From positions 2,701,765 to 2,765,764 of the forward strand of contig CAJINV010000012.1 of assembly GCA_905178155.1 (NCBI GenBank): a stretch of 64,000 nucleotides of DNA, read 5' to 3'. This document shows positions 1,513-64,000 of the stretch, one piece after another. The DNA comes from Amoebophrya sp. A120. Its lineage: Eukaryota > Protista > Dinoflagellata. Each line of letters opens with the position of its first letter. The stretch's first letter is position 1. Both the position numbers and the translations under genes were made by a program. The notes under the pieces are model-generated. The model saw only the letters and a list, made by a program, of their open reading frames with translations. It was not told the DNA's origin and did not search any database.

Positions 1513-4175
1513 GACAGTCGCCTTGGTCCCGCCGCGGGTCGGTTCTCGCTCGCCGCAGAGGAAAGAACCTATCAAATGCAAAAGTGTCTGGGTCTGGAAA
1601 CTTGTGACGCAAGTCCGTGAAAAGTAAGTGCCCGGTAATGCAACGCCAAGCATGACAAGTTTTTTCGTGCTCTTGTGCTGCGTATTTCGCATGAGAAACT
1701 GCGCCTTTGCATGACAGGCAAGAGGGCCTCTACTTGGTGGCCACGCAATACAGAGTGCAGAGTCATGCAAGACTAGCATGACAAACCTTGCAATCTTCCA
1801 GACCCAGACATTTTTGCATTTGATAGAACCAGAGGCGTTACCAAACTGTCCGAATTCTCTCCGCCATGCGCGTTGGACGTCGTAGTTGTCCCACCTGTTG
1901 CGGTACCCCCACCACGATCTCCAAGATCTTGTGGTGCGCTGTGCTGCACTTGCGCTGCATGATGACGACTTTGCTGCGCGGCCAACGACGAGCCGGCGTC
2001 TGCTAAAAATCCTGGAGCTCCTCCTGCGCTAGAAGTACTAGCACCTCCAGTGGCTGCCTGCCGCCGTCTGGGGTCTCGGTGGTCATCATCTAAATGCATG
2101 TTTTCTATCGCGGACGATAAATCGCGGCTTCCGCCTCGGGTTGGGACGCCAGAGGTTCTGGATGCTGTTTGGTCGCCCGCATGTTCCCCGCCAGGGGTGT
2201 AGTCCTGTTGACCACCTCCACCTCCGGCGACAATCTCTAGCGGCGATCGGTGTAGCGTGTCTATCAGACTGTCCACGCAGGTTGCCTGCGACTGCCCCGA
2301 CTGCTGCCGCGTCAGCCTCAAGGGGGACGCTTGTTCACCAGCGGCACCTTGCCCTTGGAGGAGCTGTTGATGTATACTAGCACCTTGTAGTTGATGCCCC
2401 ACCAGCCCACTTTCTAGCTGTAGTTCTCGTGCCTGCTGCTGCTGATCCCCCCGTCTGCTCCTTGGCGACGCGCCACTGCTTCTCGACAGCACAGGATCTA
2501 CTCCGGCTGTTATCCTGTGCAAAAGTAATATCGTACTCGTAGTAATTGCGCTCAATCTTGTTCTTTAGGTAAATCCGCATTACAAATTTTATTTCTGATG
2601 CTAAGGAAATTTGTATTGCATTTATACGAGTACGATACCTTTGCAGTTCATAGCTGTCGTGCCACGACTACTTAGCTCGTCCCCACAACTGCCACTCAGC
2701 AGACCACCACTTCCGTTCGGGTGGTGGTGGAGTCGCAACGGGCCGCCCCCGCCGGAGTTCACGCTGCGGCCGTTGTGCGAACTACATGATCCACCTTCTC
2801 GTTGATCCGTTTGAAGGTAACTTGCCGAACACGAATTCGCGGCCGTACCGCTGATCCCGCTGTTGCACAGACTGTTCGAGCTGGCGGTGAGTGCGCGGGT
2901 GGACTCGTTCGGACCCAACGTAGTGGAAGACCAATCCAACGGGTCTATCGGAATTTTTCCCGCGCCAGCAGTACTACTAGCTGAAGCCATACCTACACCG
3001 GTACCACGAAGTGGTGATTTCTCAACCCCGTTCACCACCAGTACTTTTGAAGAACTCGCTGCTGCCTCCCGCCTACTACACCCGACGTCCAGCTTCTGGT
3101 TTACTCCGTTCGAGGCACTGGACGCACCACCCGCACCTCCTGGTGGAGCCCCCCCGAACTCGGGCGTGGTCGACGTAGTGCCGTCGTCTGTTTTGCGCGC
3201 TCCACGCGGGTGTTGCGCGGGGGCCGCGCGCATCTGGGCCTGTCCGCCGCTGGTGGGCACGGTCTGGTCGCCGGGGGCAGAGGCTGATGACGATGTTTGC
3301 TGTAGATCATGTAGTTGTTCTTCGCCTGTGCTGTGGTTGGAAGCAGTAGAGACACCTGCTTCAGCTGTGGCTTTCGCTGTCGCGGCTCGCGGAGAGGACC
3401 TCCCGAACCACATGGCGCGCGCGAACACAATACCACCAGAAAAAGAGCGTGAAGTCGCACGGGAAGAGGAAGATCTTGCGCCGCCCTCGACTGACTCTAC
3501 TTCTGGTGGCAGGTCATCCTCTAATCCCGCTAGTTCGACGAAATTAAAATTATCGTCTTCGTCTGAAAAGCTTCGACGCGTGCTTCTCATTGAAGACGCT
3601 GTTCTGGCTGTAGTTCTAGCGCTCGCACTTATTTTTCGCTGGTCGTTCTTGTTAACGATGTTTCTCGTATAATCGAAAATCACACTCGATAGCAACGACA
3701 ACGACCCTGCGCCACCACCATTTCCTCCCCCACCTCCGAGCGCGAGACACAGCAAGCCCAGTCTCTTTCTCCACTGGTGAAACCTCTGCCTGCGCTTGTG
3801 CTTTTTCCGCGCGCCCAGGGGCAGGAGGTGGTCAACCACTAAATCCGGCTTTGTTCGTCCCGGCGCTATGTTGGCAGCACAAATTGGATTCGAGTTTCGG
3901 TCGACGATCCGCGAGGACCTGTCTAGCCTTACTGGCTCCTTCGTCTGCATTTTTGCGGACGACGAGAGCAGCATTTTTTTGGTCGTCGATTTGCTCCCTC
4001 TTCGTATGAAGATCTTCCCAGGTGCGAGGCCTCTTCCTGCGGTTTGTAGAAGATGATGAGGAAGTGATGCACTAGCGCCTCCGCCCTCGTTATACTGCGT
4101 TCGCAACTCAATTGGCTCCCTCTTTTTCTGCCGCACCGCAGGCAATGGGGCGGTAGAATTGAGGTGGACAAGCAA
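1513..4175 (-). CDS. Hypothetical low-complexity (S/A/G/T/Q-rich) protein; multi-exon, 3' end beyond the window, start uncertain (first ATG at 3974)
   Basis: ORFs 2622-4175 and 1773-2555 join in frame (GTT|AGVDPV) after removing element 2511-2652 plus one DR. Removing 1570-1825 continues as TPLV|LSSAASENRPAAGPRRL. No recognisable domain. Confidence 0.6.
1570..1825. mobile_element. TIR intron (introner), family A
   Basis: TATCAAATGCAAAA.TGTCTGGGTCTGGAA TIR; DR gaacc/gaacc. Confidence 0.9.
2511..2652. mobile_element. TIR intron, family B
   Basis: TATCCTGTGCAAAAG...TTGCAGTTCATA; DR gctgt/gctgt. Confidence 0.9.
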
Positions 4176-5847
4176 ATGACTTCCAGCAGACGAAGCGCTT
4201 CTGTGCTTCTGTAAAGGTAGTGCTATCTCCTAGCACGACGGACTACGTACCCTCTGGTGCGACCTCACAAGATAGAAGTCGCAACTAAGATGGAGCTGGC
4301 TGGACCTTGACGAGTCGGCTTCGTATCTCGGTTCCCCTTCATCACCCAGATCTTCACGATCCGTTAAAGAAACTCCTCCAGCAGGCCTCGGTAGCGCGGT
4401 TTTCGTTTTTGAACGGACGAGAGCAGGAGGACCGGATGTAATTTTTGTAAAACCGGTGGAATAGATGCAGTTAATCGTGCGCGGCTAGCATACGAAAGGT
4501 GTTGACGGTTCATAATTTGCGACCTTGGAAGAAGTTGTTTTGGTTTTCTGGTCAACATGACCCCTGTCCTTTTTGCCGTTCCGTGTGTGATGCGGAGATT
4601 ACATAGTTTCAGATAATTTCCTTCGGTAGTACTACAACTCGTATCCACGCCCGCCTGGTGCTTGTGCAGAAACATCGTAACAACCTGATTCCGCCTTGCC
4701 CTTGCTGCGATGTACTACAAGGATTCCTTTTCCATAAGGCAGGCACGACGAGGTCGTCGTACCTACTAGTATACAGTGATCATAGATCATAGACTTCGAT
4801 AGGTCGAAATCGGTCGGCGTCGGTCGCGAAAAAGTAGACAATAAATAATGTACGAATTATACAGAAGTTGGACTGACCTGGCTGACACTTCCTCGACTAC
4901 CAGAAAGACAAGAGTCTAAAGATTTCTCTTTGTCGCCTACAGATTCTTGTTTCAATGTTGAGAATGCAGCACGCAGCGACAAAAAGAACCCGCGTGGACA
5001 CAAGGATCTAGCACTGTTTGTATGTTGTATTGTACGAGTTAGTAGCAATACTTGTACCACGATTCGTCAATACAAACTGACTAATACCAGGATCTTCGTG
5101 TTTCCAGTTTTTAAACAGAGCCTGGAGCTAGACCCAACTACATGATCGCGCGGCAGCACCTGCCCTTCCTTTCGCCGGCATATCTTCATCAAAATTGAAA
5201 ATTCGCAATTTATAATATACGTAAAAGAGTAGCGCGTAGGATCCTGCATCGGAAAAAAAAGTAAACCGCCCTGGTCGCGATCTTGCTTCGTATGAGAAGA
5301 TTGATCGTTTTCTCAAAACCAAAAGTGATGAAACTACAATGAAGATTGAGATTCACGGTACGCTGCCACGAGGAAATAAAGGAGATCTTGATCTTCATGC
5401 GGAAGAAATGTGAAGATCTTTGCTCCTGGTGACCTACGGCGCATATTGAGAGAGACTTCCACCACGGTAGAAGAGTTCTAGGTCGTTCGAGAACCTGAAC
5501 TCCAATTGAGCAGCACGACGACTTTGAGCCACAACTCAAGGCAAGAACGGTGGTGCTGCAGGTCTGCTAATTCTGTTTTATTCATTTAGAAGCTCTACTA
5601 CGTTTATTGATTTACAACCTCCATTCATTGTGTTGGTCGTCCTACTCGAATCATTATCATACAGGTTCTTGGTTTTCAGAATTACCAATAGAGCCACGCA
5701 TCCGAAATATTCCTCGAAGTTTACATCTCTGTGCTGGCCTACTTAAAAGTCGAAAACAAAAAGCACAGAAACGACCACGCTCATGTTTATCAATTTATCA
5801 ACCTGTTGAAAATATTTTTGTGGAACGTTGCATGCAACTCGTAGCTA

Positions 5848-8800
5848 CTAATCCTGCAAGAACGGCGGCCGGCAGTCGCCATACTGAGCAACCCACTCTC
5901 GCCACGGCGCCGTAGTGGAGGCCGAGGTGCAGCTGCTCGTAGCTTCTTTTTCTTCGGCTTCACCGTTGTCAGACTCTTGTTCCACCACGCAACCGCGCAC
6001 AGTGTCTTCATTCTTCCCCATCAACAATGCTCTGTTCCCAAACACGACCACCATCTCCTTCGCCCTTGTCAGAGCCACGTTCATCCTTCTTTTGTCCTAT
6101 CCCACGAAAAAACTGTTTCACTGTGATGATTTTGCAATATCTGCATCACAAGTTTGCTACACATGACGCGGAAAACTTGCCATGCGCGCTTCCGAAGGGA
6201 ATAAAACACGCTTGAAACTCCAATGTTCTATGCAGGTGTAGCAAGACGAACACCTTGGTGCTTCGTTCTCTGCATCACAAGTTCACAGTGAAACAGTTTT
6301 TTCTTGCGATATGTCCGTCAGAAATCCCAATCTTTTCGTACGCACGAGAGAAAGCAAGACGATGTCTGCTTCCGAGCCCTGAAAGCCGTCGATGGTGGAG
6401 CAGGTGATTTTTGACGAGATCTTCGTTTTCTTGTTTTTCGGTACTTCTTCTGCAGCTTCTTGCTCTTCACGCAGCAGGAGACCTTGAATCAACTGCTGCT
6501 GTGCTACGTAAGGGGTGAGAATCGCGATTCTACCAGCAACCGCTGTAACAAGTCCAAGTTCGTCCATTCTCTCCACCAACAGTCTGGCGTATTGCACGAC
6601 TATCCGTGCTTCGCCTTGGTTTTTCTTACTGCCTGTGTGGAGGTTATGGCGTTCTCAAACGTTACATTCTCAACTGTTACATGAAATTTGTCATGCAAGA
6701 ACAGCAACAACCGAAGAGGCAAGATTGCTGCTTTCGCATCACAGATTTGGCAGAGATTTAGTTCCTGTTTAGCCCTTCGGAGGTTTGTCATGCGTGGCCG
6801 CTGGATCATCTGGAGGTTTTAGGTAGTTTTGCATGGCAAATCCGTGTAACAGTTGAGAATGTAACAGTTGAGAACGCCATAGAGGTCGACGGATTCTTGG
6901 AACAAGGTCGTCGTCGCGTCCTCCGTCTCTTTGCAGTCAGGGTCGGCTTTTTGTAGTTTTTTGCGCTCGCTTTTCCGAGAAGCAATAAAACCAAAAGTTG
7001 TAGTCTCAACTACATTATCGCTGCCGGTGTCGCCGTTGATGTCCTTTCGAGAAAAAAATTTTTCACACGAAGAGCAGGAGTCCACAAAGGCCACACGGTT
7101 AATAAGAGATTGCTCTTGCACCTCAGGTCGTTGTAAAAACGTGCCGGTCGTTCTTGATGTCGTTTCATCAGGTAGGTCACCTCGTTTCATCTTCAAAGGC
7201 GGTTCTTTCATGTCGCAGTACATTTTGCAGTCGTCCGCGTCGCTGATGGAAGATGAACTACACGACGTGGTTGTCGGAAGCGCCAGCACTTGCGCCGTTT
7301 TATTCTCACTTGTGCTACTAGTATCCTGAGGCTCGTCAACATCCTGAGGCTCTAAAAGTTCGTCCTGGCAGCAGCTGCTTGTTGCTCCTAGCACATCAGG
7401 ATTACAACTACCCTTGTCATCAACATCTTCAGCTGACCTCAGGCTTCCTCCGTAGAAGCACTGGTTTGGAAACTTCAGGATGTCCGGGTGCATGCGTCTC
7501 TGCGTCACTAGTTCCGTCACTTCAACAGAAGGTCCTCGCGGCGCAGTATCATTACAACCAGCGGAGGAAAAATCTATTTCTCCAGAACGGGCACTACTAC
7601 TTCTAGTAGACCCGGCCGGTCGTTCATGTTCTACCGCCACAAGTCTGTCGAAAAGAGTCGTCGCGAGGCTAAGTCTGTCGGATACAACTCCTGCCCCTCC
7701 TCTGCGCGGCGAAGCTGGCTGCAGCTGCTCAGAAACAACGACATTTTCTTGCAGCAAGACGGTCGGTGGCAACTGCATCGGGTCTCCGATCAGAACCAGA
7801 TCGTTGCAATTTCTACCCAGCGCAATCAGGGTGGACAGCTCCGTGGACTGCTATGAACTGCAAAAGTATCGTACTAGTATAAATTGCATTACAAATCAGC
7901 CCAGCATTACAAATTTGATTTGTAATGCTGATTTACCTTGAGAACGAGATTTGTAATGCATAAATGCAATTACTACGAGTACGATACTTTTGCACAGGAT
8001 AACTGCGTGGCTTCGTCGATGATCACACGCGGAAAAGACACATTTGCAAAAACCGGGTGTCCGACTCCGCAGCAAGTGGTCACAATGACCTGGACGTTTT
8101 CGATTTCATTCCGCCACTCCTGCAGCTTCTGGGCGTAGGACTTATTTTTTGCATTTATTTTGCGAGGAAAGGAGCTGAGTCGCATCGTGGAACTCGCCTG
8201 GGATGCACCCTTGTGCTTCTTGTCAGGTAAAACCAAAACCGCTTGCTGTAGTTCTTCCGGCGCCGAGTTGATGGAGCGAAACCGCAATGCCCCGATGTTG
8301 TGATGGGTTCGCAAGTGGTGGTAAAAGTTGTCGGCCGCAACGTTGCTGTCGGCGACGCACAGAATCTTCTTGTTGTTTCTCTGCTGGTGTCCTCTTTCGC
8401 CGGCAGGCGATACTTGGTAGTGGTCTATGTTATCCGGTTGTAGGTTTTGTCCGAATCCTTCTTGAAGATCTTGATTTTTCCATTCCTGCACAGTCGTGCA
8501 CGCTGTCCAGGTTTTTCCCGTTCCGGGCGGTCCAAACACCTTTCGCACCCTACAACTTGATGACCGGTCTGGCTTGCGAGACGACGTCTTCAAGTGCGGT
8601 GAGAAACGACCTCCGCAGGCTTTATTTTTTGCATTTGCTTCTTCGTCTTTATTCCCTGTGGTCCCCGTCCCGGCAGCAGGAGTTCTTAATGAACCATCAG
8701 GCGCACTGTGTTCCTCTGATACACTGTAGTTATTGCTTTGACGCAAGAACATTACCTCGTGCAAAAACCGGCGATCGTATTGGAGTTGCATCAAATTTTG

Positions 8801-11800
8801 CTGTTCCGCGAACGGGAGTGTAGCCCTCGTATTCCTGGACGACGAAAGTAAAGCTCCCGCACTGCATTTATCGTGCTCCGCAACTCCTGGTCCTACACCT
8901 GCTGAACCCCCACCGGACGAGCCCCCTCCCCAACCTACGCAACTCATTTCCAGTGTCATTCGCTTGTAGCTTTGCACGTTCAAACACGCGGCGCGCAGCG
9001 CAGCCACCTGTCGCGCGGCCGTGGTTTCCGACGAAAGAGGGTGGACCTCGACTCTTACGGTAGTACCTTTTGATGGGGTATGTTGTATTCTAATTTTTTG
9101 CGTGTCTACTGCTGTGTCGGAAAAGCACGAGCTGCCGAAAAGCGATATTCGATCCTCCTCCTCCTCGTCGCTAATTTCATCTCCCTGTGCAGCAGCGGAG
9201 GATAATATCTGGTCGAGGGATAAAGAACTATTTGCTTCTTCTACCGGGAGTTGTAGTTGTAATCCGGGGGTTCTGTGCTCATGTAAAACTTCCGTATTAT
9301 CTCGGCTTCTGTGACCTTTCAGAAGAACGTGGTCTTGGTGCGAAGAAGATTCATCTAGCAACTGCACGTAGAGCCTACCGGTTCTGATGTTCTGTGGCAA
9401 CATGTTGACACCACCTGCGACGTGTGCAGACTTGTTCCTGGACACGGCGACCCCTCGATCAGCATTTACTGTACCTGAAATCCCTCCTGATGTTGCATTT
9501 TCTTTCCGCAGTACGCGTGCTAAAACATTTATGCACATGCTGTTGGTTGTGGTCCCAGCACTCCTTGATGATGACGCAGAGGGGCTCCTGCAAGGCGAAT
9601 TTGTAAGTGGTGCTGGCGTCCTGGGGACAAGAGGCCCCTCTGTACTTTCCTCGACCATACAATTTCTGACCACGCGCAGCAACACAATGTCGTTTTTCTG
9701 GAACTGATTTTCAGGAAAGGAATAAGGCGTATTGGTTTGCGGATCGTTGTCCTCGACGTCCCCCGGCTTTCCGAAGCTGCCTTCCTCCTCCTGAGGCAAA
9801 ACGTTCAGGGAGAGAAATGGGGATACAAACTCGCCGACCGAAGTCTGCACAACGACTCCTCCTGTCATGGATGAATCACCTCCGACCAGATGATCATCTT
9901 CGTCCTCGCACGCAACTTCTACCGCTGAGTTTCTTGAAAGTGAAAGAGCACCAGATCTTCTCGGGTCCTCCTCGTCGTGTGTCAAAACTCGTTGTAGTGC
10001 AACGCCCATTTTGGCCTGCAACGCCAAGTCCAGTCCAGTTTTCCTTTCCAGCGCTGCCAAAACCCGAAACTTTCGGAAGTATTCCATCGCTGCCTCGTTC
10101 TCGAACTCTGTCACGAGCAGGTTGGCGCTGCGCAGCAGTGGAAGCAGTACAGCGACGGAAGGGTCGTTGCAGGACTTCCCGAAGGAGGAGTCGCTTACGT
10201 CCTTGCCATGATCTTGTTTCTCGGCGTCACGCGGCGGGTTCGTGATCTTCTCTATATCGGGGGCACTAGAACTAGAAGAGCTACCCATATCAAAATAAGA
10301 AGAAGAAGAAGAACTACGAGCAGCAGTCACAGTCTCAGGACGAGATACAACGTCTTCTAACAACATTTCCCACGTGCTCGGATCCAAGGCTATTGTACTT
10401 CGTGACACATCAGCAGAATCTGGTCGGTCGGAGCTTGATGTCGCTGTCTTTCTTGTCCGCCGTCGGCACAACTCATCGTCGTCTTCTTGCTGTAATACTA
10501 AGTCCCGCAGCACCTTCTCCCTGCACGATGTTGGGTTGTAAGCTTCTGCTGAGGACATCATATTGGCCCTGTTTTCGTTGAAGACATTGGCCTCCAAAGT
10601 AGAACCTCCGCCTCCCTCTCCGGCAGAAGTCCTACATCTATGATGGTAAAGCGCGGCAACCTCGTCACACCGCTTCGCCAGGCTCCAAATTTCGGGTAGG
10701 CAGAGAGAAAGGAAACCCGCGGACCTCTTCTGTAGTTGAACAGCTTCAGTGGCAGAGGTACCTCCAGGCGCCGGCCGATCCTGCTCCTGAAAAGTCGCAA
10801 TCCACTTTTCTGCAGACTTGAGAATTCTCTCAAAGTTGGAAACTAATCTAGTACGTTCTCGGTTCATATTCTCCACCTCGTCGCCCTGTCGTGCAGCGTG
10901 GCGCATTTTTTGTGCGATCAACATCCTGTCAACACGCTGCCTTGTTGCCCCGGCAAAAATGGTATCCGTCCCTCGGTCCTCTTCCTTCTTACACAGAGCC
11001 CGGATCTGCGCTCCTTTCTGGCGGTCGAGCAAGCTTATCTCCGAATTTATCAAATTCACTTTCTTCAGCATCTGCTCCACCGCACTGGTTCTCGCGAGGT
11101 CGGCGGTCTTCCCGAGCCCGCGGGTCATGAAGGACGGATTAGAAGTCTTTTTCATTTGTTCTTGCGCAGTCGCAGATGAAGTCGTCGTCGTTTTAGTACC
11201 GTTTCGGTCCTCGGCGCCACCAGGACGAGAAGCAGACACTTTCGGTTTCAGGATCCACTGGAGACTGTGGATGTAGGAGTGCTGCTGGTTCATCTTGCTG
11301 TCAAATGACTTTCTTGTGCACGAGCCCGTCGTTTCTTCAACAACATGGTCGTGCTGCGAAGCGGCAGCTGGGTGCTGCTCGGGTGTTGTTGCATAGAAGC
11401 TCGACGACATGTTGGTCGAAGCAAGAGTAGTAGAACTCGAAGTAGATGTAGTTCGTTGTGAAGTGAGAATCTTCACCGACGATTCCTTCACTTCGATACG
11501 ATTCGTTCCGCCCTTTCGGGGACCGGGTTTTGATGTTCTAGCTCCAACGATAACGTCGTGCATCTTCAGCAACATGCGCCGGTCTTCCTCAGGGTAGTTT
11601 GAAGATACCAGTGCAAGATCATGAGCCCCCAGTAGATCAACATTGGTAGAAGTTCCTGCACGACGTCCACCAGCTGCAGTGTCGACGGCCGGATCAGGAT
11701 CAGGATCTTCTCGTACTAATATACAACCAGTTTGATGGCGCCGCCCGGAAGGATGTTTCATCGCAGCAGATGCAGATGATGATGCGGGTACAAGAACTTG

Positions 11801-12163
11801 TTCTTTTGCACAAGAACCAACATGGAGGGGGCTGACAACTCTAACTGGTCGACGTGTAGAAGCAGATGAGGTGGCTGTGAAAGTTCTTGTGCCGACGTTG
11901 AACAACCTTGTGGTTCGACAAGAAGAACTACACCTGCGAAGATCTCCTCCATGAAGATCTCCTGGCGGACGAGCACCACTGCGTAGTTCGTTTCCTCGTG
12001 CCTGGTGTGCTGCTGGCACTGAAAGCACAGAAGTACTGCACCAACGACCACACGACCACCGTCTGCTGGCAGCTTCTGATGCAGGAGTAGTTGCAGCTAG
12101 AGGTACTAGAGCTACTCCATCGTCATACAACAAGCTTCTACTTGTTGTTTTTACACGTCGCAT
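5848..12163 (-). CDS. Upf1/NAM7/DNA2-like superfamily 1 helicase; 4 exons, 1899 aa, long low-complexity N-terminus
   Basis: Motifs: Walker A GPPGTGKT, ADSNVAADN, VIIDEATQ|STELSTLI, LIGDPMQLPP, TQRRMHP, SKKNQGEA, ILTPYVAQ, TIDGFQGSEADIV, FLTD|KRRMNVALTRAK. Exons sum to 5700 nt after removing three elements plus one DR each. Confidence 0.9.
6098..6311. mobile_element. TIR intron, family I
   Basis: TATCCCACGAAAAAACTGTTTCACTGTGA TIR; DR tgtcc/tgtcc; lies just before helicase motif VI. Confidence 0.92.
6645..6881. mobile_element. TIR intron, family D
   Basis: TATGGCGTTCTCAA TIR; DR gaggt/gaggt. Confidence 0.92.
7852..8001. mobile_element. TIR intron, family B (opposite orientation to 2511)
   Basis: TATGAACTGCAAAAGTATCGTACT...TTTTGCACAGGATA; DR actgc/actgc; splits DEATQ|S. 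Confidence 0.92.
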
Positions 12164-13275: not shown

Positions 13276-13322
13276 CCTGAAGGTGAATGCTTGTGAAGTG
13301 GTGACGTACACCGCCGCACCCC

Positions 13323-51600: not shown

Positions 51601-54600
51601 CACTAAAAGCAGGCACTGGAGGTCAAGAAAAGGCATTATTTCATACACAAGTAGTATCTAGGCGCCGGCTCCCCCGGTTTTCCCGGCCGGCGCCGGGGAG
51701 CCGCGGCTGGTCACCGAGACCAGTGCGCAAAAGTTTCAATTCTGGTATGTGGTTGGCGCACCGCCCGGGGAAGCCGCCGAACAGGTGCGGCAGCAGCTGT
51801 ATGCTGACACTGCTGGCGTGGACGCCTCTGCCTGCCAGCGGGGGCAGGCCGGTCGCGTCCCACTGACGACAAACCCAAAACCCGCGGCGGGTGGTTTCGT
51901 CTGCAGGAAGCGACTGGCGCAGGGCGTGGGCGAGATCGAAGTAGCGGGCTACCTTCGATCCCGCCGCGGGTTCACGCCCGGCCAACTAGCCATTTACGCC
52001 GCCCTGGGACAAGCCCCGCCGGCAGTTCCTCTGGGGTCGCCGCTGCCTAAGGAGGCCGCAGTTTTGTCTGGGTCTCGGTCTGGAAAAGAAGTGCGAAGGG
52101 GCTTTTTGTGCATGACACAGAAGGTCTAGCATGTGAAGCAGCACACGAAAGGCACCCGGGACGCGAAGGGTACCTAGAACAGAAAAAAGCTTAGAAAACA
52201 GACAACAAAACCTATAACCAGAAAAGCTTGGTCTGACAACGCCCAGTATTTGTCTGTGCTGCGCGGAACATACAGCTTGTTTGTATGTGGAGCGAAAGTG
52301 GTGCGGCTGTGATTGAATGTTCATTGTGGCATGAGAAAAACTCGTACAGAAACGGCGCGCTGCGGCTTTGCGGTTACCACAAGCAGGAGCGCGCGCGCGC
52401 GCGCGCGCAGCACAAGGGATCTGGCTGCGGGACGTCTTGCTTCGCACAAAGGTTGACTGAAGCTAGCGCGCGCGCGCGCGTAGTTCGAGGGCAAGGGCAA
52501 ATAATACGCGGCACGCATACAACAACGACCGAGAGGCCGCGCCTGAGGAAGTGCAGCCCTGCACGCAGGGCGAGGGAAAACACTCACACAATGACCGAGG
52601 AAGCGGCAGTGCTCTTTGGCCACTGCTCACATGGACATTTGCTCTCAATGGCGTCTGTATTTTAGCTAGCAGTCCGCGGGAATACAGATGACCGAGCGAC
52701 TGCGGACTGTGCGTAGTCGTAGTGCGGCGTAGCGCGGCCGCCGCTAAGCGGAACGCCGCGGGGCTAGCGCGGAACCATACAAAACAACGGCGCAGGGGCA
52801 TTGTAGGTCCCTTCCCGCACGGGGGGCCCGGGAAGTCCTGGGGGCCCCGTACGGGACGGTAGAACCAGTTTCGCAAGGGTCCGCAGGGAAAACTGCGGAC
52901 CATAAAATACGAAGAATTTGTATGTCTGGGTCTCGGTCTGGAAAAGAAGTGCGAAGGGGCTTTTTGTGCATGACACAGAAGGTCTAGCATGTGAACCAGT
53001 ATTCCTGAGACCCCCCATATTATATTTGTATGTCGGGACACGAAGGGGCCTGCCCCTAATTGTCCTAGAAGAAAGCGTGCCTATAAATCGCTTTCTCATA
53101 CAAATTTGGTATGTTTTATGGTCCGCTGCTTTCCCGGCGGACCCTTGCGAAACTGGTTCTACCGTCCGGTACGGGGCCCCCAGGACTTCCCGGTACCCCC
53201 GGACGCGAAGGGACCTACAATGCCTCTGCGCCGTCGTTTTGTATGGTTCCGCGCTAGCCCCGCAGCGTTCCGCGTAGCCGCGGTCGCGCTACGACGCACT
53301 ACGCGCCGCACTACGACGATGAACAGTCGGCAGTCGCTCGGTCATCTGCATTCCAACGGACTGCTAGCAGAAACAGAGTGGCCATAGAGAGCGAGTTTCC
53401 GTGTGAGCAGCAGCCAGAGTGCGCTGCAGTTCGGTCCTTGTAAATTCTCCCTCGCCCTGCCTGCCGGGCATCACTGCCCCGTATGCGGCCCTTCGGTCAT
53501 TGTAATACACATTCCAATCCTGCGCATTATTCGCCATTGCCCTCAAACGCGCGCGCGCGCGCTAGCTTTTATCACCATGTTTCTGGCGGAGTAAAATACG
53601 CAGTCAGGTCCCAAGCGTAGCACACATCTAACAACAAATCAGTAGGCAGCACAGTTCTAACTCCACACAGTAGCTTAATCGTTTTAAATCAATCGCGTCC
53701 ACTACATTCCGCACGCGCTTCCCTAATCAAAGATCGATCCAAGCAATACCTGTAAAACCGCATCAATTCAAAGTAGTATAATCATCGGCAGCACTGTAGC
53801 AGAGCAGTTTTTTGGTTTTGAACAAGCAGAGACAACATTGACAGTTTAGCTGTATTAGTATCTACGCATCGGCAGCAGTACAGGGCAGCTTTTTGTGCAT
53901 GAACAGTCTCGGTCTGGAAAAGAAGTGCGAAGGGGCTTTTTGTGCATGACACAGAAGGTCTAGCATGCAAGTCCTAGCTGCAGCACAGGTTTTGAGCAGG
54001 TTAGGCGATGCCTAATCTTCCGCGTGAGGAGGACAAGTGCCCTCTTGTTATGGTCGTGGCAAGAAATGAGCAACTTTTGCGGTCCATGGGTGAGAGATTT
54101 TTTTCTGGTCTCAAATACGCTGCATCAGAAGTTTATTACATGTTTCCAGACGACCCAGACATTTTTGCATTTGATATCGTCCCGGTAAAAACGTCCCCGC
54201 AATGCGAAGACCAGTCGTCAAAACTCAGAAACCTGCGCAACGCCTCGGCCTCGCTGGCACCGCTCAGGTTGCGCACCTGCATCAGAACGCCGTGGTGGTT
54301 GTCCTGGGCTTGAGGGGAATTTTGGAATTCGTAATTGCTTTTGGCCAGGTTGAAATTCGCGGCCGTAATCTTCACGCTGTTTATCAAATGCAAATATTAT
54401 CCCTGGATCATGTCTGGAAAGAACTTGTAATGCTGGGTGCCGTAACATTCATCAGGAGGCCACAAGTGCTGGCTCAGCATGACAAGTTTCATCTGAGCTT
54501 CTAGGTGCTATGCCTATTCTGCATGACAGACTGCCTTTCTGCATGACAGAAAAATGGGTCTCTCTCTCTTGGGTAAAAATGTGCATGACAGATTTAAGAG

Positions 54601-56004: not shown

Positions 56005-58016
56005 CTTAGTTACTCCGGTGCTGACTACACGTCTGTCTCCTGTGAGACAGAACCAAGGGTGTAGTTGAGTAGTGAAATAGAAATGAGATGTGAATGATTT
56101 GGATGGCGTGTTCTTTCACAAGCAAGTAGCAAGAAGAGGTTAGTTTAGATTTTTTGTTGTGGAAGATGAGGTTGAAGATAAACTTGATTTAACGATAAAA
56201 ATTTTTATTGATTTGTTGACAGAAAAGTAGTCAGAATTTGCAATTTTTGATACGTGGAGTTATTTCATATACTTTGCTGCAGTTAAAGTTATCAGGAGAG
56301 AAATGGGGGTCGGACTATCGACATAGAACGACAGCTCTCCTGAAGGTGTTGCGAAAAGACGTGAAGATGTCAGACATTCTGTTGAAGTAAGTAGCTCGAA
56401 ATTAGAGTCACGAGATAATGCCTTAATGCCTTAGAAGTGTTAGACTCGGCCACGCCACGCTTGCCTTGTTGAGGGCGTTGTAGTCACGACAGCATGCGGA
56501 ATTAGAGATAATACTGCTAGCACTAGTGTACTACGTCGACGATAGGTAGCAAGTGCGCACGAGCTAGATATGTACGATGCCGACGATAGCAAAGCGATTG
56601 ATGTGCGACCGATGACTTCGTTCTATTCGGAGTATGTACGAACGGATTACCGATCTTCGGGAGGCTTTGGAGTTCGAACTACCGACATGATTCGTGCAGA
56701 GGGTTGTACAACTACTTCTACGCCAAAATAAGTCATTCGTCTGCGTTTCACCTTTCTTTTACACTACTTCTCCAGGGCACGAACATCTAGAAGGACGAAA
56801 ACCGAAGTAATGCTGTAGTCAACATCCGGCGCGCCGGCAACCGATCATTCCTCTACTAGAAGGCCGGCGGCCCTCTACTTCTTGACCATGCAAAAATGCT
56901 CAAGAACACCGATTTTTTTCACCAAACGGGGCGTACTAGATCATGACATGCAACCGAGTATCTTCAGGGTCGAATTACGATGAAATATTTTTTTCCTCGG
57001 GGACATCCATTACAGGAGCTACAACTACTGATTGATGTATTTCTATATTTTCTCGACAGCGGGCTTGTTCTTTCCAACCGAATATTATAAAAGCAGCGGC
57101 GTCCGCACAACTATTGTTTACCACAAGAACCGATCATGGATAATATTTCTTCAACGCGAGATACCTCTACCTGCTCTGGACGTAACAAGTAAGTAGCACC
57201 AACTAGGACGGGAAAGTTGTCAAGACCACGAAGCTGCAAATAAATTATGATCTTCACATGTTCAGCTAGCTAGTTGCACTTCGTTATGCAGGAGTTGTAG
57301 TCGCATCATGTAATCTATTTTTGACTTGGATTCTACTTCACTGATCAACACCGAAGTAGAATTTCCACGATCAGACACGGCGAAGAAGTAGAGGAAGAAC
57401 ACCACAACGCTGGCGCTGCTTGAGCTTGTACTTCGTTCTGGTGAGATTATAACGTCAATCATGAAGTAGAACGCGAGAGGACCGACCTCCTAGTTAGTAG
57501 CCACCAGACCTTGAACTTTATCTTCTCGTGTCGCCCCTTGTTCTGACTGTCGTCTTCATCTCCTCATCAATCGACTGACAGGACACTGACCTAAATCGGA
57601 AAAATTATTTCCGCAGTATGATATCTACTCGTGGTGCCTTTGAAAAATAATTCGTAGTTTCTTCTATCACTATCTGTTCTAGTGGTTCTTGCTGGTCACG
57701 ACCTCCAAGCCTGGCAACATCCTAAAAAATCGATTAATCGATAACTTCAAATTTCCGAATCAAGAAAAAAAGGACGCATATTTCCCCAAGTCGTACAAGT
57801 TCTTGCACCATGTAATTTTTAGCTCGAGCTCGGTTCATTACGTATTTGTTTTTCACACTCCTTTGCGGTGCAAACCTCACACATTCTTTGAAAAAGTTTC
57901 TCCGGCGAAAATCTTGGAAAACAGTCTGTAGGTATTGATGCCCAGGATCGACGATGCACTCCTGCCGACGCCGGGTTCTACTTGGTTTACTCCTTGGTAC
58001 TAACAAGTATTTTCAA

Positions 58017-58166
58017 TATGAAATGCAAAAGCATCGTACTAAGTATAAATCGCATGACAAATTCCCTCAGCATGACGAATAAAATTTGTAGTGCGGGTTT
58101 CCCTTAAGAAAAAGATTTGCAGTGCTGACTGCGATTACTACGAGTACGATACTTTTGCACAGGATA
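58017..58166. mobile_element. TIR element, family B, in non-coding DNA (possibly the PI4K 3' UTR)
   Basis: DR ttcaa/ttcaa; no long minus-strand ORF crosses it. Confidence 0.85.
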
Positions 58167-58555
58167 TTCAAAGTAGCTTGTTTATAATTCCCAGCATCAT
58201 GGCCGTCTTCTACTTAATATTTGTGTTTCATTTGGTGCTAGTAGCTTGTCTGTGGCAACTCGTCCTGCTCCACCGAGGATGAAGAGCTCGTCCTTTACCT
58301 CGTACGATGGCTTGGTGCAGGAGCGTCGTCCCAGCCGGGGTAGTTGCAGCTCTTGATCGAAGTAGATCGAAGAAGGATCCTCCAGACGGTACAACTTCTA
58401 CTCCACGGCAAGAAGACCCAAAAATGCTGCTGAAAGTGGATTAAGAAGTCATCTAACGGCACTGGCTGTGATCATCAGGAGGATCTTCAGGGAGGACCAC
58501 TACGCTGATTTGTTTTCCATCCTCAGCAACCGGTTATAGTACTTCTCCTTCTTTG

Positions 58556-61500
58556 TCACAAAATCCCGTTCGTGATGCGCTGGTAGTTGTCGTACTGCCT
58601 GGTGTATTGCGAGGAAAAATCCCCCGTCCTCATATTGAAAACGTGCTGTCTGCTGGAAATTTGTGACGCAGATCTGTGGCCACAAATCCTGTCTGTCTTG
58701 CTAGAAGGCAGCGCCGGGCTCTCTGCCACACTATAATGCGGGCGCTTTGTAATGCTGGAAGGACTACAGGGCAGCCGTCTACCATGCTAGGCGCCTACAC
58801 CAAAAAGGTCCCTCTCTAGCCTCGCGATCTGCGTGCAGTCCTCTACTGCAAGACGCATCTGATTTGTGTACGCAAATCCAGCATCACAGATGTCCTTTTC
58901 GATATGGGGAGGGGGATTTTTCTTTTTGGTATTGTGCGCCAGTTGTTCACGGAGTTGTCGATTAAGTGATGATATGAACCGCAAAAGTTTCGCAGCACTC
59001 GTAGTAATTGCAGTCATACATTCTTACGAAGTCTTTTTCATTTATTTTCTTGAGGTAAACCGCATTACAAATTTAATTTCTCACGCTGGGGACGTTGTTT
59101 GTATATGCATTTGTACGACGAGTGCGATACTTTTCTTGCAATTCATAGATGAATTTGTTCGATGCAGGCGTCGTCGGGAATGCCACGGAAAAACCTTTCT
59201 TCCAGCTCCGTGATGATCAACGAGCACGGCTTTCCGCTGAAGCACGGTTATTGTGAGGAAAAACGTCCCCACCCCGGAACTACTTGGGAGCATTTGTATT
59301 GCAAGGCTTTCCAATGGAAACGCTCGCCGTCTTGCATGTATCAGCATCACAGATTTTCAATCGTGAATAGCAAAAATTTGCACTGCAAAAGATCCCAGCA
59401 AGAGCGGCGCGCATCATGCAAGCGAGGATGCTCTATACGACTAGCCTCTGCATCAGGAAGACGAAGAGGAAGATTCGTAGTCCTTTCATGCATGACAAAA
59501 GGTTCTCATTTGGAAACTTCGCATCACAAATTATTCAAACTTTCGGGGTCGTGGGGGCATTTTTCACTCTGATAACGGCAGGTTACTGTTCGCCAAGGAC
59601 TGGATCAGGGTGGAAATGCGCTCGATGTGCCGCCGCGCCTCCAGAAAGCCGCGAGTTATCAACTGCAAATATGTCTGGGTCTGGAACAAACTTGTGATGC
59701 GGGTTCTTGGCGAATCATGAGGGTGCCGCAATTGCCAGCCCAGCATGACAAAACTCTCCGTCGGTAGGTGTAGTGGTCTATTCCGCATGACAAATTGCGT
59801 TCTTTCCGCATGACAGAAAAGCGAGACTGTCTTGGGAAACTACGTGCATAACAGACTTGAGAGCTATGCTAGCCGAGCATGGCAAGCCTCGCATTCTTCC
59901 AGACCCAGACATATTTGCAATGCATACGAATCAGGAGCGTACAAAAGTACTGGTACTGCTCGGATTCTTCCCCGTCCATAATGTCCAGGAATTCCTGCGT
60001 CAGTTTGAACGGCGAGGTTTCGAACGCGATGTTGCCCGGGGAATTGCTCAGCATGAAACCGAAATCGATGTGGATGATGTGTCCGTTGCGTATGGAAGTG
60101 TCAGGATCGAAATCGTCAAAGTTGAAATAGTTTGCGATGCATAAAACGGATCCCCGTTGGCGCCTAGTTTTCAAGTGGCGCATGACAATTTTGCGTAGAA
60201 CTGAAATCCAGTTTGTAATGCTGTTTGGGTAAGGACGACGCCTTTTGTCATGCTACTTTAGTAGCTCAATTTCTACCCCCCCAACAGGCTTACAATCTGC
60301 ATCCCTTGCGTCCTCTGCAATAGTGGCAATTTTTACGTTGCATTTTATGCATCACAGGCTATTTCAACTCTGTCAATTTCGATCCTGACAGTTCCATAGT
60401 GCGGTCGAGCAGCATGTTCCCGTTGTGCCGGTCCCGAACCTGCAGAAAGTAGCACACCAACGAATAGGCCGCCGTCGACTCGGTGAAGGCCCGCTTGGCC
60501 TGCAGCAGCCGGTCGCCGAAAGCCGTGTTATGAAGGCCTCAGAATGGAAATCCTCAAAATGGAAATAATTTGTGATGCATGAAATGCGACGCAAAAAAGA
60601 CTGTATTGCAGCGGACGCAATGGAGGCCGACTGTTGTCCTTCTACGGGGGAAGAATTGTAGTGCTGATTAGCACGAGAGAAGGGCACCCTTTTGCCTTAA
60701 CCAGCATGACAGACATGCTTTGAGTGCCCGGGAAATTTGTCATGCGCCGCCTAAAAGTGGCGCTTCAACTGGACTGGTTTTTTGCATTACAAACTATTTC
60801 CGCTTTGAGGATTTCCAACCTGAGGCTTTCATACGTGTTGAAGACTTCGGACAGTGACTTGTCCGGGAATTTCCGCTTGAGCCGGTCAATCGAAATGGAG
60901 TCCGGCACCATCTCAATGAACCCCGAGCGCGCGCCGGTAATCAGAACCTCGATCGGGCGGAGGTACCTGAGCAAATAAAATCACAGGGAGTCGAAGATAC
61001 AGTCTTAGTTTTACTGGTGTTTCATCATACTCTGTCTAGTATCGAGTTCTTGCACCGATCGACAACAGGTGGCGCACTCTCGGGGCTTGCAGATGTTGAA
61101 CCCACATGATCGCTCTTGATGTCTTTGCTTTTTACACAGGAGAATAGCGGGACGAAGAACCGGTCTCGACTTTGAAACAGATACAAAAAGATAAAGATCA
61201 CTTCAGCCCTAAATTAAACTACAAGTTCAGGCCGGGCGCCTGGTCAAAAATCCACTTGAACTGGGAGATCAGCTATGAATCGCAAAAATATCGTACTCGT
61301 AGCAATAGCAGCTATGCATTACAAATCAAAATCAAAATCTAGGTGCGTGTCAAGGTAGATCCGCATTACAAATTTAATTTGTCATGCTGAGCTAAAAACT
61401 TGTAATGCAATTCATACTAGTACGATCGTTTTGCAATGCATATCAGCTGGCTGGCTAACACTTCCTGTCGCACGTCGTCGCCGGATTTCACTATAATGCT

Positions 61501-64000
61501 CCGCAGAGACCTATCCCGTGTAAAAACATCCCCACCCCAAAGTTGTCATGCCATTCTGCATGCCAAAAAAGTTTCTCATGCGGAGCCCTATGAGAAGCAT
61601 TTTCTACTCGTGTTTTGGGATTTGTGATGCAGCTAGGATCAGCATGCTATGGTAGATCTGTGATGCTTCTGAGCTAGCCAAACAGGATGACACTACGAGG
61701 GCAAACTTGTCATGCCAAGCAACCAAAGCGGTGTGATTTGTCTAGCAGATTTCCCATCTTGACTCTGGTGTGGGGACGTTTTTAATCAGGATAAGACCAG
61801 GACTTCAGCTTTGCGTACTTGGAAGTCTGTTCGATGCGTTTTTTCTTGTTGTCCCAGGGCTCGCTCCAGATTTTCTTGCGAAACTTGGCCGCTTGCAGTT
61901 TTCGGTGCAGCAGCTTCTTGTACGGCGCAAAGCCATTCTGATTGTTGCTCACCGCCATCCCGGCCCGAATGGCGCGGAGCTCCGCTTCGCCACACCCGGA
62001 AATGGTGTTGGCATAATTGGTACTACCAGTTGTGTTAGCCTCGTCAAGAAAGACCGATGAAAACGCCGAGTCAAAGTCGAACTTGTCCGGATCCTTGCCG
62101 AAGCTGACGGGCAGGGATTTCGAGGCGCGCAGGGGTGGTTCGAAGTAGTGCGGGTCTTGCTGCTGCGGGGACAAAATGTTTTTGCTAGTTGATGTAGTTG
62201 TACCAGAAGTTCTTGTTGCACCGATATTATTGTTCATAAGTCCGCTCGGCTTACTTGGCAGCGAATTGGACGCCGCGGAGCCCCCGCCTTGCAGGTTCTT
62301 ATTTCTGGCGCCGCCTGCCATGGGAGACGTTTCATCATCCGCAGCGGGGGACGCTTGTGCATTTACGCCGCCTATCCTGTCGTGGTTCTGGCCTTGCGGT
62401 GGATCTACTTCGCTGGGAGCTCCGCCGGCTGCATTTCTATCTCCGGCGTTTTTCCCAGGGGGTGCCGAGAGCGTGTGGGCCATTACTACTTGTCCTGTCT
62501 CTTGTTCTGTAGTACCTGTGGCGCTTGTCGCGGTCTTTGCTCCTGCAGCTCCATCTGCGCTACTAGCAGTGACTGCGCCTCCCAAAGACGGTGCTGCCAC
62601 GGGAACAACGGAAGAAGAGCTGGACGCAGGCGCAGTGCCGACTTGGAGAACAGTTGTGATGTCATTTGCTTGTTGACTTCCTAAAGAGGATGGCTCTGGT
62701 TGTACTCCCGGAAGAGGTGCAGCTTCAGTGCCCGCATTATCATCCCCCAAAGCGGTATCCACAGCATCAAACTTCGCACCAACTCCTTCCTGCATTGTAC
62801 CGTCAGTGCTGTTGCCAACAGTCGACGTAACTCCGCCTTCGTTGCTGGCTATTTGATTCTGCCCCTGTGGCTGATGCTGTAGTGCCAGCAACTCCGAGGA
62901 CGTCAAATCTTCATCGTAAATATCGTCCCCGATCGACGCCTCCTCCGCCGCAGCGGCAAGAACCACCTTCATCGCAGCCGTTTGCGCTGTCGCTGCTGCT
63001 GATGTAGTTGGGCCACTCGTAGTACTCGCCGCCGCCGCGGACGATGTTGGCTTGATATTACTAGTTCCCGCTTGGGCCCCGAGCGGGTTCATCTTCGTCG
63101 CAGCAGCAGTACCAGCTCCTCCCACGACTTCGTCGGAGGTCAATTGTAGTAGTTCCGTGGAAGATTCGTGGCTCATCGCACCGGGGGCTCCTCCGAAGGA
63201 AGAAGTAAATCCAGGATTTAGTATCTCCAGCTCCGTATCGGAAACGTAATCTACCTCGTCCGCCTCGGGAGTGTCATCCCGCTGGTAGACCTTCGCTACC
63301 CATTCCGGCAACGAGATTTTTTGCAAGAGCTTTTCCATGGTATCCGAACTGAAGTCGTCAAACAGCGTCTGCATCTCCTGGTAGACCAGGTCCCGCCCGC
63401 TGATGTGCTGTTTCTATGACAGTGCATAACCCCCCCTCCCCCTCATTTGTGTTGCATGAACAGCAACACAAGCGCTGGCAAAGATGCAGCTTTTGCATGC
63501 CAAATTCCTAGGGGATTGTAGTGCTGTTGCGGATTCCGGAACCTGTCTTGCAAACAGTACTAACAGGCAAAGGGTGGATTTGAAATTTTGCATGACAAAT
63601 GAGGGGGAGGGGGAGTTGTGCACTTTCATAGTTTCGTCTCCTCGTCGTCAAGCTCTTCATCTAAGTCGCCAAACTCGCAAATGAGCAGAAAAGGAGCGCG
63701 GGTTTTCGTGGAAAAAACTCGGCAATCGTGGGCATGGACCTATTTTGATACTGATTTTTTCTCCGTCATGTTGGTGGCTGTGGCTCCTTCGCTCTTCAGA
63801 TTAAGAACATCAACAGAGCGGCCCTACCTTTTTTTATTCGAAGAACCTCTCAAGGAGAAGAACAAGTAGGACCTTAGGCTTAGCCATACCACGAATACGA
63901 TGGTGGATAGAAGTACTTAAATGCATTATCTTACCTTCAACAGCTGCAACCTAGTGTCCCAGCCGTGCAAAGGAACGTGCAGTCCGATCATTTGAAACTC
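58556..64000 (-). CDS. Phosphatidylinositol 4-kinase (type III beta/Pik1-like), 5'-partial
   Basis: Spliced protein contains [81 protein letters not shown] and [19 protein letters not shown]. Nine TIR introns and two GT-AG introns. Confidence 0.93.
58605..58931. mobile_element. TIR intron, family G
   Basis: DR tggtg/ttgtg; frame NNWRT|RQYD. Confidence 0.85.
58973..59147. mobile_element. TIR intron, family B
   Basis: DR gatga/gatga. Confidence 0.87.
59249..59574. mobile_element. TIR intron, family H
   Basis: DR acggt/acggc; frame NLP|CF. Confidence 0.85.
59657..59926. mobile_element. TIR intron, family A
   Basis: DR cgagt/cgaat; frame LIR|GFL. Confidence 0.87.
60091..60398. mobile_element. 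TIR intron, family F
   Basis: DR ttgcg/gtgcg; lies between the DRHNGN and HIDFG motifs. Confidence 0.9.
60529..60833. mobile_element. TIR intron, family F-like
   Basis: DR cgtgt/cgtgt. Confidence 0.88.
60967..61222 (-). other. Canonical GT-AG intron in the PI4K gene
   Basis: Minus strand aactt|GTAGTT...tttatttgctcAG|gtacctc restores GLNLYLRPIEV. No TIR or DR. Confidence 0.8.
61274..61442. mobile_element. TIR intron, family B
   Basis: DR tcagc/tcagc. Confidence 0.88.
61512..61793. mobile_element. TIR intron, family E
   Basis: DR agacc/agacc; frame KSWS|LRSIIVK. Confidence 0.9.
63415..63630. mobile_element. TIR intron, family L
   Basis: DR gtttc/gtttc. Confidence 0.88.
63740..63934 (-). 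other. Canonical GT-AG intron in the PI4K gene
   Basis: Minus strand ttgaag|GTAAGA...aaatAG|gtccat restores LQLLK|VHAHDCRVF. Confidence 0.8.

Follow-up and report, generated by a model that had tools for sequence, protein, structure and literature searches.

Introner elements were reported from the Amoebophrya sp. A120 genome by Farhat et al. (2021, BMC Biol 19:1; PMC7789003), who found more than 60% of its introns to be non-canonical. In their account, 29,850 repeated introns make up 17% of the assembly; these fall into strain-specific multi-copy families resembling miniature inverted-repeat transposable elements (MITEs), form hairpins, are supported by RNA-seq, and are bounded by inverted repeats of 8-20 nt starting with TAT-N7-AAA and by direct repeats of 3-5 nt (text) or 5 bp (Fig. 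S19). The same authors reported that U1 is missing, suggested a distinct splicing mechanism while leaving the machinery open, and stated that the position of the intron border 'remains unknown', the inverted repeats lying 1-5 nt from the called splice sites. Here we examine a stretch of 64,000 bp (positions 2701765-2765764 of contig C12 in the 115.5-Mb A120 assembly, on which all genome-wide searches were also run), hereafter the window, in which genes for a superfamily-1 helicase, a PI4-kinase (PI4K) and a large protein of the public record are interrupted by elements of this kind. Very probably these are the published A120 introner elements, removed from pre-mRNA at one fixed place. As Farhat et al. 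describe the same elements in the same genome, with TAT-N7-AAA inverted repeats, 5-bp direct repeats, hairpins and non-canonical borders, the phenomenon was already known, as an earlier note on this DNA had stated for Amoebophrya genomes. Nothing in the window differs from it in kind; what is added is that the border resolves to -1/+4 in the informative cases, a refinement not found in the papers searched, and one based on few junctions.

Nonconventional introns of euglenids and diplonemids are similar: their borders vary and are not GT-AG, the junctions carry short direct repeats, pairing close to both ends occurs at fixed offsets and leaves a longer unpaired 3' tail, a MITE origin is suspected and the machinery is unknown (PMC11282704, PMC12501133, PMC6221363). 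The fixed offset is found in the window elements as well, where the helix begins at +2 and ends at -5 between variable borders. However, these organisms belong to another eukaryotic supergroup, and their introns pair through CAG/CTG at +4-6 and -8 to -6, whereas the window elements have UAU/AUA at +2-4 and -7 to -5. Circular products have been shown for euglenid introns; A120 has clear high-copy families with terminal inverted repeats (TIRs) and target-site duplications (TSDs), unlike euglenids and diplonemids. The MITE introns of Fritillaria borealis (Henriet et al. 2019, as reported in PMC11282704) are likewise insertions tolerated by splicing despite non-GT-AG ends; according to that secondary account, AG-AC or AG-AT ends dominate there and the U2 spliceosome is credited, whereas A120 fixes only +2/+3 and -6/-5. 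That a transposon lineage may become phenotypically silent in this way has already been proposed for Fritillaria and Euglena (PMC11282704, PMC12501133). Canonical introners of Micromonas, Aureococcus, Polarella and other dinoflagellates (Huff 2016; Gozashti 2022, 2025; Roy 2023; A120 is included in Gozashti 2025) are also TIR/TSD DNA transposons that create introns, but they carry or co-opt GT and AG and the window elements do not. With MITEs the window elements share TIRs and a TSD of constant length; the GT/GC...AG ends of a U2-type spliceosomal intron are seen, at the inferred register, in only 2 of the 70. Internal eliminated sequences (IESs) of ciliates are TA-bounded, transposon-derived and excised by PiggyMac, their precise removal restoring the gene; they are removed from DNA, whereas the A120 elements are retained in DNA contigs. 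With tens of thousands of transposon copies in coding sequence removed from RNA without GT-AG, A120 has one of the oddest intron systems, and our addition to it is small and concrete: where the two repeat copies of an element differ, they reveal a border otherwise hidden by the direct repeat, and here it comes out as one register.

A strict scan of the window, which demanded a perfect 5-bp direct repeat and at least 11 of 14 complementary terminal bases, gave 47 matches against 4-6 in shuffled sequence, the majority of the form TAT...ATA. Looser criteria and an end-signature matrix yielded extra elements, and curation guided by the gene model CAD7965417.1 and a transcript contig of the public run X3 gave a final set of 70; a first curated set of 55 elements was used for the canonical-site and internal-similarity counts. 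All have TA...TA ends, inverted terminal repeats and a flanking 5-bp repeat, features on which the earlier note was right; its count of 71 becomes 70, and its figure of about 14 families depends on the threshold, as clustering by the terminal 22 nt gives 5 groups and internal similarity among the 55 elements gives 8 multi-copy clusters plus 20 singletons. In the sense direction the 5' end is TAT in 65 of the 70 elements and TAC in 5, and the 3' end is ATA in 69 and GTA in 1; by position, T, A and T prevail at 1-3 and the sequence is A-rich at 11-15. In strain A25 the elements start with TTA. The 5-bp repeat, which has no target preference in sequence, is perfect in 43 elements, carries one mismatch in 18 and two or three in 9.

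The largest set of junctions comes from a single gene. A 150-aa exon at window 41902-42351 (minus strand) matched a single public protein, CAD7965417.1 ('unnamed protein product [Amoebophrya sp. A120]', Genoscope model GSA120T00007340001.1; hereafter P0001). The spliced coding sequence (CDS) of 5,994 nt translates 100% to P0001 with zero differences, so that the claim of 53 consecutive in-frame junctions in one gene proved exact. In 53 of 53 introns the removed piece is a TA..TA element plus 5 nt; by a rough estimate, about 7% of introns would show a suitably spaced TA..TA pair by chance within the range searched. The elements range from 146 to 6,923 bp, the intron phases are distributed 19/15/19, and two adjacent pairs of elements enclose micro-exons of 12 nt (38838-38854, between introns 27 and 28) and 14 nt (30660-30678, between introns 31 and 32); exon definition is thus independent of exon length here. 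Three swollen elements of 4.1, 6.9 and 3.1 kb (24119-28224, 30679-37601 and 51087-54176) are still introns in the gene model. GC-rich open reading frames (ORFs) inside the first two (24791-26191 and 30862-32175) gave no Pfam match, and the third holds a GC-rich inverted repeat with arms of up to 207 nt (52522-53503).

Removal of the elements also restores recognizable proteins in the other genes. In the helicase gene, position 224 of the AAA_11 profile falls on the last residue of one exon and position 225 on the first of the next, and AAA_12 runs from 173 to 174 over another junction; the junction peptides DEATQ^STEL and FLTD^KRRMNVALTRAK (with ^ marking the junction) are rebuilt. In the PI4K gene, the peptide NWRT^RQYD and the catalytic loop DRHNGN..HIDFG are rebuilt, and the PI3_PI4_kinase profile runs from 157 to 161 over the element between DRHNGN and HIDFG. 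All these motifs are those that the earlier note had named; for the Pfam and protein searches, exons were queried singly and never joined. A homology search with the 1405-aa helicase exon returned no match, not even its own gene, low-complexity words having likely swamped the candidates.

The PI4K gene is covered by the X3 contig (4,777 nt, depth 44.5), which was placed on window 57750-63700 with 0 differing letters in the listed pieces. It skips each PI4K element together with 5 nt, unlisted letters accounting for the elements outside the listed skips, whereas contigs of the DNA run X1 cross element borders in this region and the assembly likewise retains the elements. If X3 is RNA, as we guess, this bears out the expectation that mature RNA is free of the elements. 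The element at 58017-58166 lies past the PI4K stop codon in the 3' untranslated region (UTR) and is also absent from the X3 contig; removal is therefore not tied to the reading frame. An ordinary GT-AG intron sits among ten element introns of the same gene (60967-61222); it was worked out from the sequence and from how long the contig pieces are, the two short exons not being among the listed pieces.

A perfect repeat hides the cut and unequal copies do not, so the cut can be read at imperfect repeats. We let j stand for how many nucleotides of the upstream (sense) repeat copy remain in mRNA, set all 53 P0001 introns to one j and translated the result. At j=4 we found 0 differences from P0001 in 1997 residues, against 4 at j=3, 9 at j=5, 12 at j=2, 14 at j=1, 18 at j=0, 41 at j=6 and 46 at j=-1. 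For introns 11, 32 and 46, whose repeats have decayed, j=4 is the sole solution, and ten distinct introns tell j=4 apart from j=3 or j=5. For the corresponding count k, read for the left copy on the plus strand, the X3 contig gives a bound on either side: at 60087-60399 (TTGCG/GTGCG) the mRNA retains the first letter of the left copy (k>=1), and the contig piece next to the intron beginning at 58600 (TGGTG/TTGTG) reaches no further than 58599 (k<=1). Together the two bounds leave k=1, the equivalent of j=4. At all informative junctions, the intron appears to begin 1 nt before the first T of the element and to end 4 nt after its last A. Placed in this register, the 70 introns have a free first position (A 15, C 24, G 16, T 15), T at +2 and A at +3 in 70/70, T at -6 and A at -5 in 70/70, and free positions from -4 to -1. 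If the register holds genome-wide, it amounts to a defined splice signal, N^N-UAU...AUA-NNNN^N, and explains the minority of 'canonical'-looking elements as a chance match of the flanks.

What is recognized can be narrowed down by orientation. Non-TIR interiors of family members align in a single orientation only, and by this measure 60091-60398 lies in the opposite orientation to 60529-60833, 58017-58166 is reversed with respect to both 58973-59147 and 61274-61442, and 55355-55609 is inverted relative to its family; the members of the first two sets are all absent from the same X3 contig, and the last is intron 1 of P0001. Because inverted copies of one family are all removed, internal oriented signals are unnecessary. 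Of 47 elements folded by minimum free energy (MFE), 40 pair at least 9 of their first 14 bases with the opposite end, and the median z is -6 against mononucleotide shuffles; elements with poor ungapped TIR scores mostly have a helix that closes a few bases in. A fixed register combined with removal in both orientations means that recognition is anchored on the element ends. The signal is a pair of self-complementary ends, UAU[C/G]...[C/G]AUA, to which the predicted TIR helix would contribute; recognition is independent of GT-AG, of internal oriented signals and of exon sequence; and the cuts are asymmetric, the 5' one lying 1 nt beyond the helix and the 3' one 4 nt beyond it. The view that removal is guided by ends or structure, put forward in the earlier note, is thus supported by the fixed register, the orientation independence, the invariant U+2/A+3 and U-6/A-5 and the predicted terminal helices.

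We picture the elements as short non-autonomous TIR transposons that would have inserted into exons and UTRs with a 5-bp TSD; they measure from 146 bp upwards, the longest (up to 6.9 kb) having presumably been swollen by nested insertions. DNA keeps the elements and pre-mRNA loses the element plus 5 nt, through a 5' cut 1 nt upstream of the first T, which would make intron +2/+3 always U and A, and a 3' cut 4 nt downstream of the last A, which would make -6/-5 always U and A. As the removed piece would be the element plus 5 nt, the pre-insertion frame would be restored regardless of the flanking sequence, even where the repeat copies have drifted.

Several points weigh against this reading and call for caution. 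The register comes from one gene model and one contig, which together offer about 12 junctions that discriminate, every one of them in a minus-strand gene of a single window; the P0001 CDS was itself read from the genome at junctions chosen by an aligner; and the bound k<=1 depends on a 36-nt X3 piece inferred from the coordinates of the record rather than listed. The RNA nature of X3 is a guess, and the RNA-seq runs X9 and X10 placed 2 and 0 reads on the PI4K region; these runs (2026, same species label) may come from another strain of the species complex or be low in parasite RNA. Contigs drop rare variants and so cannot reveal minor alternative registers, retention or rare excised alleles. 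The MFE fold of one element that is spliced, 17804-17968, lacks an end-to-end helix, and no autonomous partner, that is, no transposase-coding element, was found in our searches.

Hidden canonical sites would make the introns ordinary spliceosomal ones: the repeat permits six equivalent placements of each junction, among which a cryptic GT-AG, GC-AG or AT-AC might lie. In 14 of 55 elements, sliding does bring up a canonical pair in one register or another on one of the strands, but none is possible at any register on either strand in the other 41, and at the register fixed by unequal repeats (j=4) we found GT-AG in 2/70, GC-AG in 0/70 and AT-AC in 5/70, about what chance gives for variable flanks. 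The absence of shared canonical ends, as claimed earlier, thus stands, and we reject cryptic sites for most junctions; as a general account they have a negligible chance of being right. Chance flank matches may in turn explain why some 'canonical' introns of Farhat et al. show the layout of inverted and direct repeats. Elimination from the DNA of transcriptionally active nuclei, so that mRNA copies a cleaned template, would recall ciliate IESs in the TA...TA ends and in the single restored repeat copy of precise excision, and X3 is not proven to be RNA. Such elimination is nevertheless very improbable, because at each covered site the elements are present both in the assembly and in the X1 DNA contigs. 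Moreover, no precise-excision joint occurs among the best-supported X1 joints listed, transposase excision followed by repair would not leave just one cut between positions 4 and 5 of the repeat, and the introns of Farhat et al. were called from RNA-seq against DNA (PMC7789003).

Removal from RNA leaves the question of the machinery, for which the earlier note had inferred a dedicated excision pathway; we consider a modified spliceosome at least as likely, the present evidence fitting either. A U1-less spliceosome with relaxed rules for +1 and the 3' site has, in our judgement, an even chance. In its favour, a GT-AG intron is processed in the same PI4K transcript as element introns, and the UAU at +2 to +4 matches the corresponding positions of the canonical GUAUGU-type 5' splice site consensus. 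Nearly all spliceosomal proteins are present in A120, with U1 missing (PMC7789003). Our own covariance searches of the genome for U1 (RF00003) and U2 (RF00004) were both blank and are uninformative: the blank for U1 means nothing, as U2 was also blank although Farhat et al. report it from transcripts. A dedicated non-spliceosomal pathway, which we regard as possible and rather doubtful, would rely on a structure-measuring endonuclease that cuts 1 nt 5' of the helix and 4 nt 3' of it, after which an RNA ligase would join the exons. Parallels are the splicing of tRNA and HAC1 and the route suspected for the euglenid nonconventional introns, and the piece released would be a linear or circular molecule instead of a lariat. 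The ruler-like fixed register from the helix ends, the free nucleotides at +1 and -1/-2, the irrelevance of element orientation, and removal at 146 to 6923 nt and beside 12-nt exons all speak for it, as do the comparable euglenid introns, whose helix lies at +4-6 and -8 to -6 and which are excised as circles (PMC11282704, PMC12501133). Against it are the flanks, which are identical copies rather than complementary and so form no bulge-helix-bulge, together with the splice-site match, the spliceosomal proteins and the GT-AG intron already mentioned. Its strongest form, in which a helix-measuring RNA excision-ligation in a myzozoan, convergent with or related to the euglenid system, neutralizes one transposon superfamily genome-wide, is unlikely, a little more so than such a pathway in general. 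If the register holds genome-wide, spliceosome and endonuclease-ligase become testable alternatives, because it predicts, to the nucleotide, where the excised product should begin and end.

Beyond the window, one 30-nt terminus of family A has 11,582 forward and 11,466 reverse matches in the genome, against 0 for a reversed control, which puts this family at roughly 11,500 copies. An orientation bias was considered, as the first 100 perfect matches (on contigs C1 and C2) are almost all '+', and was dropped: the genome totals are balanced, kinase genes on C1 alternate in strand and the window is unbiased, so that the '+' excess is probably an effect of the listing. Strand calling from 90-nt flanks was correct for 34 of the 46 elements tried in the window (74%), a rate too low for it to be applied more widely. 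Nested insertion can be seen at locus L002, where a 3,940-bp TA..TA element with TSD GTCTC and a clean TIR lies inside a family-A copy, and deleting it with one repeat copy leaves the family-typical 261 bp; an empty-site test on the swollen copy at 16567-17760 showed no clean nested TA..TA insertion. The L002 element carries neither a Pfam domain nor a host-like coding signal. Duplications of 5 bp would be in keeping with an integrase-type enzyme, a link that we infer, and Gozashti et al. 2025 describe an A120 TIR family with integrase-like ORFs. Among our own matches to the integrase domain rve, four with identical scores were rejected as candidates for the autonomous partner, being copies of a long terminal repeat (LTR) retrotransposon, and a TIR/TSD scan around ten other rve loci found no convincing TA..TA TIR with a 5-bp repeat. 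The retrotransposon is 7.05 kb long, with 366-bp LTRs and one 1986-aa ORF containing the rve domain, and its four copies (L016-L019) are 98.7-99.7% identical.

Table 1. Genes, element introns and other features, in window coordinates unless a contig is given; TSD copies that differ are separated by a slash, and TIR values are matches among 16 terminal positions.
Feature	Position	Strand	Details
Gene of CAD7965417.1 (P0001, 1997 aa)	15673-56004	-	54 exons, 53 introns; spliced CDS 5994 nt
P0001 intron 53	15889-16195	-	TSD TTCGC
P0001 intron 52	16238-16509	-	TSD TGTCG
P0001 intron 51, 1194 bp with internal insertion	16567-17760	-	TSD AACCA
P0001 intron 50, TAC start	17804-17968	-	TSD CCGAG; no end-to-end helix in MFE fold
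P0001 intron 49	18112-18379	-	TSD GGGAC
P0001 intron 48	18429-18574	-	TSD AAGGC/AAAGC
P0001 intron 47, GT-AG by chance at real register	18677-18951	-	TSD CCTGA
P0001 intron 46, decayed TSD, pins register	19052-19388	-	TSD TTCGC/GCCGG; single solution
P0001 intron 45	19604-19882	-	TSD ACGTT, TIR 16/16
P0001 intron 44	20055-20850	-	TSD GAGCG
P0001 intron 43	20925-21367	-	TSD GGTGC/GGTGT
P0001 intron 42, excludes j<=3	21452-22509	-	TSD GCGTC/GTGTC
P0001 intron 41	22600-22801	-	TSD TGGAG
P0001 intron 40	23225-23541	-	TSD GCGAT
P0001 intron 39	23670-24043	-	TSD GCAGT
P0001 intron 38, swollen to 4106 bp	24119-28224	-	TSD GTGCT, TIR 12/16
P0001 intron 37, decayed TSD, excludes j=5	28294-28674	-	register test
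P0001 intron 36	28757-29194	-	TSD TGTGT
P0001 intron 35	29282-29520	-	TSD CCAAA
P0001 intron 34, excludes j=5	29583-29842	-	TSD CGTTG/TGTTG
P0001 intron 33	29904-30211	-	TSD AAGTC/AGGTC
P0001 intron 32, decayed TSD, pins register	30361-30659	-	single solution
P0001 intron 31, swollen to 6923 bp	30679-37601	-	TSD ACCAA, TIR 14/16
P0001 intron 30	37640-37798	-	TSD GTTGC/GTTGT
P0001 intron 29, excludes j=5	37840-38144	-	register test
P0001 intron 28, long-TIR element (TAC..GTA, 147-nt arms)	38183-38837	-	gene model
P0001 intron 27	38855-39182	-	gene model; 12-nt exon separates it from intron 28
P0001 intron 26	39331-39665	-	TSD CGAGG/CGGGG
P0001 intron 25	39722-40023	-	TSD CCGCT/CCGTT
P0001 intron 24	40168-40406	-	TSD CAGCT
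P0001 intron 23	40537-41364	-	TSD CGGCG
P0001 intron 22	41428-41901	-	TSD GGTGC/GGCGC
P0001 intron 21, 1601 bp	42354-43954	-	TSD GATGT/GACGT
P0001 intron 20, excludes j=5	44008-44285	-	TSD TTCGG/GTCGG
P0001 intron 19	44365-44626	-	TSD GCCCG, TIR 16/16
P0001 intron 18	44662-44870	-	TSD TAACC/TCACC
P0001 intron 17	45044-45217	-	ungapped TIR 6/16, yet helix in fold
P0001 intron 16	45333-45880	-	TSD GGAAA
P0001 intron 15, excludes j=5	45925-46281	-	register test
P0001 intron 14	46604-46809	-	TSD GTCGA
P0001 intron 13, TAC start in sense	46847-47020	-	TSD ACGCC/ACACC
P0001 intron 12	47088-47359	-	TSD ATCTT
P0001 intron 11, decayed TSD, pins register	47407-47652	-	single solution
P0001 intron 10	47711-47950	-	TSD GAAAA
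P0001 intron 9	47991-48358	-	gene model
P0001 intron 8	48403-49258	-	TSD CAAGC
P0001 intron 7	49514-49746	-	TSD ATCCA
P0001 intron 6	49811-50375	-	TSD ACGGC
P0001 intron 5	50466-50998	-	gene model
P0001 intron 4, swollen to 3090 bp, excludes j=5	51087-54176	-	holds GC-rich long inverted repeat
P0001 intron 3	54382-54663	-	TSD CTGTT
P0001 intron 2	54701-55015	-	TSD GTACG
P0001 intron 1, inverted relative to family mates	55355-55609	-	TSD CCGGA
Superfamily-1 helicase gene (AAA_11/AAA_12), at least 4 exons	5851-12190	-	1908-aa ORF after removing 3 elements
Helicase intron element	6098-6311	-	TSD TGTCC; AAA_12 contiguous (173, 174)
Helicase intron element	6645-6881	-	TSD GAGGT; ORF continuous
Helicase intron element	7852-8001	-	TSD ACTGC; AAA_11 contiguous (224, 225)
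PI4-kinase gene, 834-aa ORF after splicing	58168-63410	-	X3 contig; catalytic loop rebuilt
Element in PI4K 3' UTR	58017-58166	-	X3 contig skips 58012-58166
PI4K intron element, limits register to k<=1	58605-58931	-	TSD TGGTG/TTGTG; contig piece stops at 58599
PI4K intron element	58973-59147	-	contig resumes at 59148
PI4K intron element	59249-59574	-	contig skips 59244-59574
PI4K intron element	59657-59926	-	contig skips 59652-59926
PI4K intron element between DRHNGN and HIDFG, k>=1	60091-60398	-	contig skips 60087-60399
PI4K intron element	60529-60833	-	contig skips 60524-60833
Ordinary GT-AG intron in PI4K pre-mRNA, 3-nt sliding ambiguity	60967-61222	-	GTAGTT...CTCAG
PI4K intron element	61274-61442	-	deduced from 113 unlisted contig letters
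PI4K intron element	61512-61793	-	contig resumes at 61794
Element at 5' part of PI4K transcript	63415-63630	-	contig piece ends at 63409
Element of 256 bp in ORF 1479-4229	1570-1825	-	TSD GAACC/GAACC, TIR 15/16; ORF fuses on removal
Element of 142 bp in ORF 1479-4229	2511-2652	-	TSD GCTGT, TIR 11/16; ORF fuses on removal
Element between helicase and P0001 genes	13040-13275		TSD CCTGA, TIR 13/16
Element between helicase and P0001 genes	13323-13601		TSD ACCCC, TIR 13/16
LTR retrotransposon copies L016-L019	C2:4.74 Mb, C8:3.69 Mb, C18:1.07 Mb, C1:15.60 Mb

Some further repeats were observed in the window. Palindromic units of 76-79 bp (TGCATTACAAAT...ATTTGTAATGCA) occur within the 150-bp family at 7885-7960 and 37681-37759, and the motifs GCATGACA/TGTCATGC recur inside many element families. 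The region before the first element (window 1-1330) has a different repeat landscape: two copies of about 420 bp (about 640-900 and 1075-1320) are rich in CCCGACT/ACCTACCCTGG motifs, and tandem-like units of 120 bp occupy window 1-260.

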